Below are positions 38,058 through 41,000 of a DNA stretch of 64,000 nt, in pieces. The first letter of the stretch is position 1. Every line of letters starts with the position of its first letter. Position numbers and translations under genes: made by a program. The stretch is from Oculina patagonica (taxonomy: Eukaryota). The stretch spans positions 6,324,001-6,388,000 of the forward strand of contig NC_135770.1 in NCBI RefSeq assembly GCF_052425735.1. The letters are read 5' to 3'. Under the pieces are notes generated by a model. That model had not been told where the DNA came from. It saw only the letters and a list, made by a program, of their open reading frames with translations, and ran no database searches.

Positions 38058-41000
38058 TTACGCCTGACCATAACACCTGAGTTTTCCTAATGTATGATAT
38101 CCTTCTTCGTATGAATTATCCAAGTCTCCCAGTCTGATTTGTGTCACAGGCAGAGCAGACTTGTCTGTCAACAGACCGCTGTCCTCTGTCCAACCGGTGT
38201 TACTGGCACTATTATGACAGTTACACTTGCGACTATAAAGACTGGAACAAGAGTCTGTTACTCCGCATGCGCACATCTTGTCATGGCCTGTAGCTCCGCC
38301 CCAGTAGTTCATCCGTGTTCCATCACGTGACACCCACCAAGCATAACTCTGCTCAATAAACCCCACGCCATTATTGCACTCAAACTTGATAAACTGTTCG
38401 CAGCTCTGTGAGACTCGAGTGAGTGCTGCTAGCTGAGCGGTGCTGACTCCAGTGTATCGCACATCTTTACTGTAACAACCTCGACCACCACATCCAGGAA
38501 TGTTACCAGCATAGGTTCTACTCTCACTGTCGTGACTGATGACCGTCACGCCAACACCGCCCTTGTCACTCATGTCACAGTACACACTGAAGGGAGTCAC
38601 GCCTCCTTTGCCATCAGGATCAATCATATAATTACCTGAAGAGTTTCCACTGCGGCTCGATTTTATACTGCTGCAGGACATGGGTGTATTGTACACTTCA
38701 AGAACAGATGTTGCCTCGATAGAACGCTGAGAGTTTTTTGCCACGCATGAATAAGTCCCGGCATCACTTGTGGAAACGCTTTGAAGAAACAAAGTTCCGT
38801 TTGGATAAAGAACATGATTCTGAGGGAGATTTTGGCCCGCTCTTTTCCAACCAATGTGCACCGAGCCCTGAGACGTGCAATGCAGTATCACATTACTGTA
38901 AAAGGATGCAACAGATTTCACTGGAGGGGATAAGGAAAATTTGAGTTCATCTATTACTGTCACTTGAACAGTAGCGGAATCCTCTCCAAGGAGATTCTTT
39001 GCCGAGCAGGCGTACGTCCCACCGTCAGATTTTGCTATAGTGCGTATGGTCAATTTTCCATCAACAACTGAAGTCTTTTCTTTTGGCAGCAATTGACTAA
39101 ACGCTTTTCGCCACGTGACTGTTGGTGTCGGCTGACCACTAGCTTGGCAGATCAGGTTCACGTTCTGTCCTTCTTCAACGATGACAGATGAGGGCTTCCG
39201 AGTGATCACAGCGCTAACTAAATCGAGGAAACAAAAACAACAGTAATAAAACGATTGGGTTGGGAGAACTTGACAGACCCGGGACTCTCTCCTTGTGACA
39301 TGTTGGCCAGAAATACTTTATTCTTATAGATGAACAATTTACTTGAGTTTTCACCCAGACGATAACTTTCTTCTATAGCTAATAGCTGTACAGCCATGTT
39401 ACTAATTGCAAATACAACCTCGATACAGTTGATAAATGTAATATTTCTTACCCACCTTGAACTGACAACATAGCCGATGACGTCATTTCTCCAAGAATAT
39501 TTCTTGCCACACAAGTGTACATTCCTTCATCTTGTGACGTCACATCTGTAATCATCAGACCACCACGTGACAGCACCACTTGTTTGCCCGCGAGAAGACT
39601 GGAATTCTGCTTCAGCCACGTGACTTTAGGTTCCGGGTTTCCTTCAACCTCGCACTGAAACGAGGCTGTATCAGTTTCGTTCACCACCATGGACATCGGA
39701 GGTGCCGCAATTGAAGGGGCTGAGATAGATTTACCAGGATCGCCCTTGGGTCCTTGGGGGCCTTGGTCGCCTTTAGGTCCCGGAGTTCCCTGAATTCCCT
39801 GAGTACCTTGGTTTCCTTTAGGTCCCTGTGGTCCTTGCGGCCCGGGCGGTCCATGTTTACCTGGAGAGCCTCTGGGACCAGGCCTGCCTCGTCTTCCCCT
39901 GTTGTTTTTGGGGCATTGAGCATTGCAGACCAGGCTACTTATAGCTAGTAGCACCTCTTTTCTGATATCTTTACGATCGATGGTTTCACTGGCATTTGAT
40001 TTCTTGTTTGTAGTTTCCACATCTCTTTTATAACGAACGCGTAGCTCTGAAAGAAACAATTTACAATGAATTTAATACACGTCTGAGTTTATATTTCACT
40101 CAGTCAATTCAACGCCCTTTTAGAACTTTCGTTCCCAAAAGTCTAATTTTGAAGTGAACAAAAAGATTGCATAAGTTAAAGAAGTCGATAGATTCTAAGA
40201 ATCTGATAAAGTTTGCAACAGCCAGGTGATTAATCAAGATCGGAACTGAGGTGGACAAATTGATATAGCCTAATTTGATTTCTTTCAAATTTGGCAGAGA
40301 ATCAAACTAACCGTATGGCTTGTACTGATTATTGACTGACTACCAGCGTGATTAATATAATTGCTCTCGAGCTCGCACGTGTTCATATCTAATTCTAGCC
40401 AGTAAACTAGCTTTTAAAATAATAGGCCTTTTCTTTTTTGACTGAAATGTTGTGGGAATGTTGCTGTTCGATGCTTCAATGTCTTTCCTGAAATGCTGAC
40501 AGTCGCTCAAAGAAAGGACACAAATGCTTCAAACATTTCTTATGTTACTGCGCTAGGACGTAAGGCAGAACAGTCTTCTGTAGGCTAACTTTAACTACCG
40601 GGCAAATGTTAATTCAATGCTGGCATTATTCTTAATGATTTTACCTAACTTAACTTATCGTGTATAAGTTATTTCTGGAATATAGACTAAAATACTCTGG
40701 ATTGTTTTCCCAAAATAAGAACACGGGATGGCGGTTCACAGGAGTCATGTTTCAACCTCCTTAGTTTCAGCTGTAGCTTCTTTAGATGAATAAAATTCCT
40801 TGTAAACAACTATTTTCTCGATAACTGTATTACTCACCTTTGTTTGCATCACTATGTAACATTTTTATCAGAAACTCATTTTCGTCGTTTGCTGTGTTTC
40901 GTAGCTCGAGCTTTTCTTCTCTTTGTTGATTCAAGACTTGAAGCATATGTCGATGAACGTGAAGTTCGATCTCGACGTGAATCAATCCCGCGAAGCAAAT

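Follow-up and report, generated by a model that had tools for sequence, protein, structure and literature searches.

Four variable loops in the head domain of tandemly arrayed CniFL genes of the stony coral Oculina patagonica

The cnidarian ficolin-like proteins (CniFLs) were, according to later papers that cite the work (PMC5094078, PMC7654579), first described by Baumgarten et al. 2015 (PNAS). They have been defined by the joint presence of three Pfam domains (Collagen, Ig and Fibrinogen), to which most members add a transmembrane segment, and in sea anemones, where one to seven copies have been counted as transcripts, they were proposed to act as receptors of the lectin pathway (PMC5094078); infection of Exaiptasia with Vibrio up-regulates them (PMC7654579). 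Neither of these two papers (PMC5094078, PMC7654579) describes a hypervariability restricted to loops or a mosaic of conversion tracts. Both appear to be present at the locus considered here, which comprises four tandem paralogues (A, B, C and D) on the minus strand, spanning 38 to 60 kb of a window of 64,000 nucleotides (nt) from the stony coral Oculina patagonica (NC_135770.1, 6,324,001-6,388,000; positions below are window coordinates).

The four genes belong to the known CniFL family, with its membrane anchor, collagen stalk, Ig domains and C-terminal head, and they form part of a tandem array that numbers about 45 or more genes on a single O. patagonica chromosome. The product of gene ACROYT_G039808 (P0001) is a 100% protein match to paralogue A, a homologue search with the paralogue A protein returned 2979 homologues, and the genes G039808 to G039854 all lie on one 38-Mb contig. 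The likeness to the anthozoan CniFLs, themselves multi-copy and proposed pattern-recognition receptors, extends to the transmembrane segment, the collagen, the usually three Ig domains and the 'fibrinogen' head, and a protein of Actinia tenebrosa carries the same head at 58% identity. The differences lie in number, the Oculina genes being about 45 or more in tandem against one to seven transcripts in anemones, and in the head, which scores under the Pfam cut-off for Fibrinogen_C and has a fold unlike that of the ficolin head.

Snail FREPs, amphioxus VCBPs, sea-urchin Sp185/333 proteins and vertebrate ficolins are multigene, tandem, and lectin-like or Ig-containing, with variability in limited regions; their mosaics are thought to have been created by recombination or conversion, and the fold of their heads differs from that of the CniFL head. 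The best fold match is to Caspr/CNTNAP, Neurexin-IV and axotactin, with which the head has in common a cysteine and motif pattern (C-N-C ... W..D.G.L..K..LPV); there, however, single domains sit in large laminin-G/EGF neuronal adhesion proteins without a collagen stalk, and no report of tandem hypervariable families of such domains was found. The procollagen C-propeptides (PDB 4AE2, 5K31) share with the head the first intra-chain disulfide pair and a Q-L...C motif; in both, the recognition sequence is preceded by an external loop that varies (PMC5353611). Inter-chain cysteines and a coiled-coil stalk are both absent from the head, whose recognition-equivalent stretch is conserved. The coral genome papers make no mention of COLFI, contactin or fibrinogen families, and general literature searches returned nothing on this tandem family.

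The four patches and the fold of the head

The head domains of the four paralogues are placed as follows.

38061-38675, minus strand: head of A, the last 205 codons of its last exon, Caspr-type and COLFI-like (AlphaFold model, fold search, Pfam)
43294-43902, minus strand: head of B
52450-53049, minus strand: head of C
58712-59317, minus strand: head of D

An earlier note on this stretch of DNA had claimed that a near-invariant C-terminal domain carries four variable patches, lying in A within 38100-38520 and in the other paralogues within equivalent regions at about 43330-43745, 52490-52890 and 58750-59160. This description is borne out: all four patches of A fall inside the first interval, those of B, C and D match the other three, and the peptides quoted for the conserved blocks and for the patch variants (for example GVGFIEQSY/QVAFIEESH/DIDFIETGY/DILFIEKDY and DNSY/NNSD/DRYN/NGSD) are exact.

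38478-38513, minus strand: patch 1 of A, 12 residues, in the loop after strand 4, with a Cys-x5-Cys mini-loop inside (alignment, AlphaFold model)
38343-38369, minus strand: patch 2 of A (GVGFIEQSY), in the loop after the long strand 6 (alignment, AlphaFold model)
38187-38246, minus strand: patch 3 of A, 20 residues, in the long, indel-rich loop before strand 8, around a conserved C-N-C (alignment, AlphaFold model)
38109-38120, minus strand: patch 4 of A (DNSY), in the loop between strands 9 and 10 (alignment, AlphaFold model)
43699-43743, 43564-43590, 43420-43467 and 43342-43353, minus strand: patches 1 to 4 of B
52852-52887, 52717-52743, 52576-52620 and 52498-52509, minus strand: patches 1 to 4 of C
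59120-59155, 58985-59011, 58838-58888 and 58760-58771, minus strand: patches 1 to 4 of D

Across the four heads of the window the mean column identity is 88%, with 48 of the 193 domain columns variable, and the variable columns are clustered, forming 45 runs where 73 would be expected (runs test, 10,000 shuffles, p<1e-4). The same four places are those at which entropy peaks in 118 heads of the family, taken from several assemblies through the homologue search, and a set of 18 copies aligned by codon shows its variability there too (runs test, p=0.0002). Among the 118 heads there are 68-96 distinct variants per patch against 26-57 per framework block, no framework block being as short as patch 4 and most equalling or exceeding the other patches in length, and the four patches occur in 114 different combinations. 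Minor variable spots outside the patches are found in the linker that precedes the head, at the H-D-K site before C-A-C, at the residue after D-G-T and at the residue after the first Tyr. Within the patches, residues such as Cys, Gly, F-I-E, C-N-C and G-W are strictly conserved, with a ratio of nonsynonymous to synonymous divergence (dN/dS, omega) of 0.02, and cysteines bracket patches 1 and 3. An N-x-S sequon in patch 4 varies by paralogue: B and D have it (N-N-S or N-G-S), as do several further copies, whereas A and C lack it.

The AlphaFold (AF2) model of the head of A, built on a 53-sequence alignment, is confident (pLDDT, the predicted local distance difference test, 93.5), and the lowest values in it are those of patch 3 (76-80). 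In the fold search the model came closest to the fibrinogen-like domains of Caspr/CNTNAP, Neurexin-IV and axotactin, with template modelling (TM) scores of 0.76-0.86 (0.84 for Caspr/CNTNAP), a root-mean-square deviation of 2.1-3.2 Å and 25-36% identity, aligned over residues 1-204, that is, over the whole domain; procollagen C-propeptides come second (TM 0.55-0.62). In the Pfam scans COLFI (PF01410) passes its cut-off in the A head with 32.5 bits, but over profile positions 31-150 of 233 only, and Fibrinogen_C (PF00147) gives weak matches of 17.5-19.5 bits against a cut-off of 22, confined to the first 50 or so residues; PF00147 is assigned to some close homologues in precomputed tables. The fibrinogen label of the head appears to rest on this weak N-terminal similarity, and by the fold of the model the head is a Caspr/CNTNAP-type fibrinogen-like domain, a relative of the procollagen C-propeptide.

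Two other assignments were considered for the head. A true ficolin or fibrinogen-related domain, whose fold takes in a C-terminal P subdomain with the binding pocket, was rejected, as TM is about 0.25 (0.24-0.29) and only some 100-140 N-terminal columns align, and the head is not a full COLFI or C-propeptide domain either, the Pfam match being partial, TM reaching only the 0.55-0.62 given above, and the inter-chain cysteine positions being occupied by residues other than Cys. The head domain belongs to a large family, for which 1932 representative clusters were counted at E<=0.001. It includes proteins of several hundred residues from amphibians (Rhinophrynus, Lissotriton and Pleurodeles; P0123, P0126, P0299) that carry at least two head copies at 46-49% identity, one of these multi-head proteins being annotated 'neurexin-4-like'; they represent an unexpected vertebrate expansion of the domain.

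The kinship with the COLFI domain, together with the collagen stalks of these proteins, lends some appeal to the idea that the patches form a chain-sorting code, which would set which paralogue chains trimerise and so prevent mixing, much as the procollagen chain recognition sequence does; patch 1 immediately precedes the stretch aligning with that sequence (PMC5353611). The recognition-equivalent stretch itself (the 12 residues before Q-L and 3 after the 8-residue conserved block) is, however, conserved here, and the variable region that precedes the recognition sequence in procollagen takes no part in the interface, being an external petal loop (PMC5353611). Moreover, neither the coiled-coil stalk nor the pair of inter-chain cysteines found in the base of the C-propeptide is present in the head, three Ig domains part stalk from head in A, C and D, and the N-terminal helical segment could nucleate a trimer. 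Chain sorting is thus quite improbable, and the analogy with procollagen chain recognition was largely rejected on the conservation of the equivalent stretch.

Divergence, gene conversion and selection in the head

The framework that the earlier note had termed invariant is conserved as protein, but protein constraint alone does not account for it. Among A-D, synonymous divergence (dS) is 0.24-0.7 in the framework before patch 1, where nonsynonymous divergence (dN) is near 0, and only 0.03-0.06 in the framework after patch 1, whereas the patches themselves show a dS of 0.4-1.1 and a dN of about 0.3. For the N-terminal framework a dS of 0.31 was obtained. The comparison of A with C gives a dS of 0.38 over Ig2 and Ig3 and of 0.06 over exon 2, in which no more than a few of the 203 codons differ; in the part of the head framework that follows patch 1 the value is 0.03. 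Given the low framework dS after patch 1 in comparison with that before it and with Ig2-Ig3, gene conversion explains much of the framework identity, and the contrast between exon 2 and Ig2-Ig3 means that conversion therefore also homogenises the exon for the stalk and Ig1.

At the DNA level 18 codon-aligned heads were compared, 14 from O. patagonica and 4 from other assemblies, out of a family of about 45 or more genes. The proportions of synonymous and nonsynonymous differences (pS and pN) co-vary in this set along the C-terminal two thirds of the head, both peaking in the patches (in patch 3, pS is 0.46-0.54 and pN 0.20-0.26), and the mean nucleotide distance is 0.24-0.29 in the patches (0.24 in patch 1, 0.29 in patch 2) against 0.04 in the blocks between them. 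The excess extends to codons whose amino acid is conserved: within patches these have a pS of 0.42, against 0.107 in the framework between patches (permutation p<1e-4), and in the framework pS falls from 0.21 beside a patch to 0.07 at a distance of six to eight codons. The patches look like islands of old divergence in a gene-converted, purified framework.

Peaks of both pS and pN, a concentration of indels in the patches, and the recurrence of patch variants in other paralogues with different flanks could also mark mutation hot spots, at which slippage, template switching or micro-conversion from diverged donors raises pS and pN without selection. Against such hot spots, the patch peptides show no evident tandem or simple repeats, the conserved codons within the patches retain their amino acids, and the smooth decay of pS from the patch edges fits linkage to old variants better than it fits a sharp mutational target. 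Of all the readings considered here this one strikes us as the hardest to believe.

The exchange of segments among copies is apparent from several comparisons. Segment distances are poorly correlated (Mantel r between patches 0-0.35), and the nearest relative of a copy switches by segment. A homoplasy test of the PHI (pairwise homoplasy index) type gave p=0.012 with an Rmin of 28 on the 14 same-genome copies, and was not significant on all 18 copies (p=0.2). The sequences downstream of B and D add a further comparison.

41791-43290, minus strand: 3' flank of B, matching that of D (57209-58708) at 98-100% identity for some 1.4 kb

Despite these near-identical flanks, and with different architectures, the patches of B and D are only 78-88% identical; the flank identity points to a recent duplication or to a long conversion tract that would have ended near the stop codon.

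Omega was estimated by maximum likelihood (ML) under the GY94 model on fixed FastTree topologies that were specific to the partition, with one tree per partition. The patches together came to 0.88, against 0.33 in the C-terminal and 0.19 in the N-terminal framework; taken singly, patches 1 to 4 gave 1.24, 0.50, 0.73 and 0.71, none of which differs from 1, and NG86 gave a dN/dS of 0.69 over all patch codons (pN/pS interval 0.54-1.02). A second set of estimates was confined to the codons with an entropy of at least 2 bits in 104 heads of other assemblies, and was fitted in the 14 O. patagonica copies. These 13 codons have an omega of 2.98 (twice the log-likelihood difference from omega=1, 10.75). 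Because such an entropy-based choice of codons is biased, a worst-case null was simulated: neutral loops with conserved residues were evolved along the fitted tree, and from each set its own 13 most variable codons were taken; among 277 such neutral simulations omega had a 95th percentile of 2.48, and 2.98 was attained in 1.1% of them (p of about 0.011). The result suggests, though it does not establish, positive selection at a few codons. The earlier note had likened the patches to the complementarity-determining regions (CDRs) of antibodies and had seen in them a sign of diversifying selection. Part of this stands, as the variation is non-random and family-wide and falls in four loops of a confident fold, and part does not: on the codon alignment dN/dS over the patches together is not above 1 (0.5-1.2 patch by patch, none differing from 1), and the excess at the 13 codons is not robust to dropping alignment columns 161-169.

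The reading that we favour, and hold to be somewhat better than an even bet, is that the loops of the CniFL head are old islands that have escaped homogenisation, contact a ligand, and owe their diversity to its being favoured and not just tolerated. The patches would be loops of the globular head of type II membrane proteins, which also carry Ig domains and a collagen stalk that is presumably trimeric. The core of the head would be kept uniform by purifying selection and by frequent gene conversion among paralogues in its C-terminal two thirds, while the loops would be short islands of old nucleotide divergence, spared from homogenisation and occurring in many combinations. Selection for diversity, acting under gene conversion and against homogenisation, predicts an excess of synonymous divergence near the patches. 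From the island shape of that linked synonymous excess, and from an omega above 1 at about 10-13 codons, we infer that the loops may touch a ligand and that differences among them may be favoured, the latter receiving weak support. The earlier note had allowed that the identity of the framework might be the work of gene conversion alone; conversion is partly responsible, but by itself it does not easily explain homogenised blocks of 66-108 nt flanking patches of 12-60 nt in every copy.

Several observations weigh against this favoured reading. The patches as a whole are not above omega = 1. The omega of the 13 codons drops to 2.42 without gap columns (p about 0.06), and to a non-significant 1.57 without alignment columns 161-169, the indel-rich part of patch 3, so that the signal above 1 depends on one indel-rich loop stretch. 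A single tree was used per partition despite evident recombination, and the copies analysed were 14-18 of 45 or more paralogues, of which paralogue D may be a pseudogene. Moreover, synonymous islands could also arise neutrally, through a feedback by which loose loops diverge and the resulting mismatches bring conversion tracts to an end.

This last point leads to the possibility that the loops are simply unconstrained, that is, neutral (omega of about 1) and prone to indels, the rest of the head being constrained and converted, with tracts that stop at the diverged loops so that synonymous sites there drift. It agrees with the patch omegas of 0.5-1.2, none differing from 1, and with the NG86 value of 0.69; with the placement of all patches in loops, patch 3 having the lowest pLDDT; with the many indels; and with the dependence of the excess omega on one stretch. 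It requires, however, that conversion homogenise the blocks of 66-108 nt and yet spare patches of 12-60 nt in every copy, the 13 codons beat the worst-case neutral null, and the retention of Cys, Gly, F-I-E, C-N-C and G-W at an omega of 0.02 argues that the loops are structured and not floppy. We take unconstrained loops to be a real but minority possibility.

Anatomy of the genes and their neighbourhood

Genes A and C have three exons each, and the parts of the four paralogues outside the patches are arranged as follows.

40830-41171, minus strand: exon 1 of A, a hydrophobic signal-anchor of 19 residues and a charged helical segment (sequence reading)
56213-56545, minus strand: exon 1 of C, counterpart of exon 1 of A (sequence reading)
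39448-40059, minus strand: exon 2 of A, the basic cleavage-like motifs RYKR and RGRRGR, then a collagen triple helix and Ig1 (Pfam and sequence)
54846-55457, minus strand: exon 2 of C, counterpart of exon 2 of A
38058-39209, minus strand: last exon of A, with Ig2, Ig3 and the head
38676-39209, minus strand: Ig2-Ig3 part of the last exon of A, two I-set domains (Pfam)
52447-53574, minus strand: last exon of C (gene ACROYT_G039810), with Ig2, Ig3 and the head
43291-44427, minus strand: last exon of B, an expanded collagen stalk fused directly to the head, without Ig domains
58709-59816, minus strand: gene D, Ig domains and head

The hydrophobic stretch of 19 residues in exon 1 of both A and C is a putative transmembrane segment, judged by eye. 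Pfam places Collagen (PF01391) in A with 39.7-41.9 bits and in B with 78.9 bits, against a cut-off of 27.2, and finds three I-set stretches in the A protein, with an identical layout in C and none found in B. In D the frame is broken between Ig2 and Ig3 by a net deficit of 32 nt in comparison with A, near 59511-59527 (within 59440-59620), so that an open reading frame (ORF) for Ig2 (59511-59816) and one for Ig3 plus head (58709-59527) lie in different frames, the frame of the head being intact; D is likely a pseudogene, or else the product of an assembly error.

Further fragments of the family are present in and beyond the window. A lone first exon with anchor and coiled coil (49505-49753, minus strand) is situated between B and C; matching exons downstream of it were not found, and it may be the remnant of a lost paralogue. 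On the same chromosome a further copy of the head (L004:21300-21861) is split over two frames and is probably a broken paralogue, and a head starting at 19987 of L005 carries an internal stop.

Elsewhere in the window, the plus-strand ORFs 2796-3191, 3803-4141 and 8957-9355 resemble exons of a pyruvate-carboxylase-type gene; the first and the last of these, the two that were scanned, contain the Pfam domains HMGL-like and PYC_OADA. An intronless ORF for a rhodopsin-family G protein-coupled receptor (6194-7066, minus strand) apparently lies within an intron of that gene. The minus-strand ORF 22477-23112 encodes 211 amino acids in which a MYND zinc finger is the only Pfam domain, and the minus-strand ORF 31164-31688 encodes Gly-Gly-Phe-Asp repeats and is rich in His, without a Pfam match, the opposite strand being a His/Gln-rich ORF.

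Implications for recognition in corals

Corals, as far as we are aware, have no antibodies, and the CniFLs are named candidate receptors for their discrimination of symbionts, pathogens and neighbouring colonies. As the loops occur in many combinations, 114 among 118 heads, the family taken together provides a large germline repertoire of them. A bolder extension, which we put forward as a speculation more apt to fail than to hold, is a combinatorial repertoire in the germline, in which four loop modules braced by disulfides would be shuffled by short-tract conversion among the 45 or more tandem genes, would be selected for diversity, and would together form a CDR-like surface on a trimeric, sheddable receptor discriminating microbes, algal symbionts or non-self coral tissue.

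The gene family itself was already described, and the main new result is the pattern of divergence at the DNA level. The analysis shows that variation in the heads is a matter of four defined loops set on a fixed scaffold, with recombination of these loops among many tandem genes. The four loops supply concrete residues for swapping, modelling and assay, and the head, at about 600 bp, offers a compact case for the coexistence of gene conversion and diversity.

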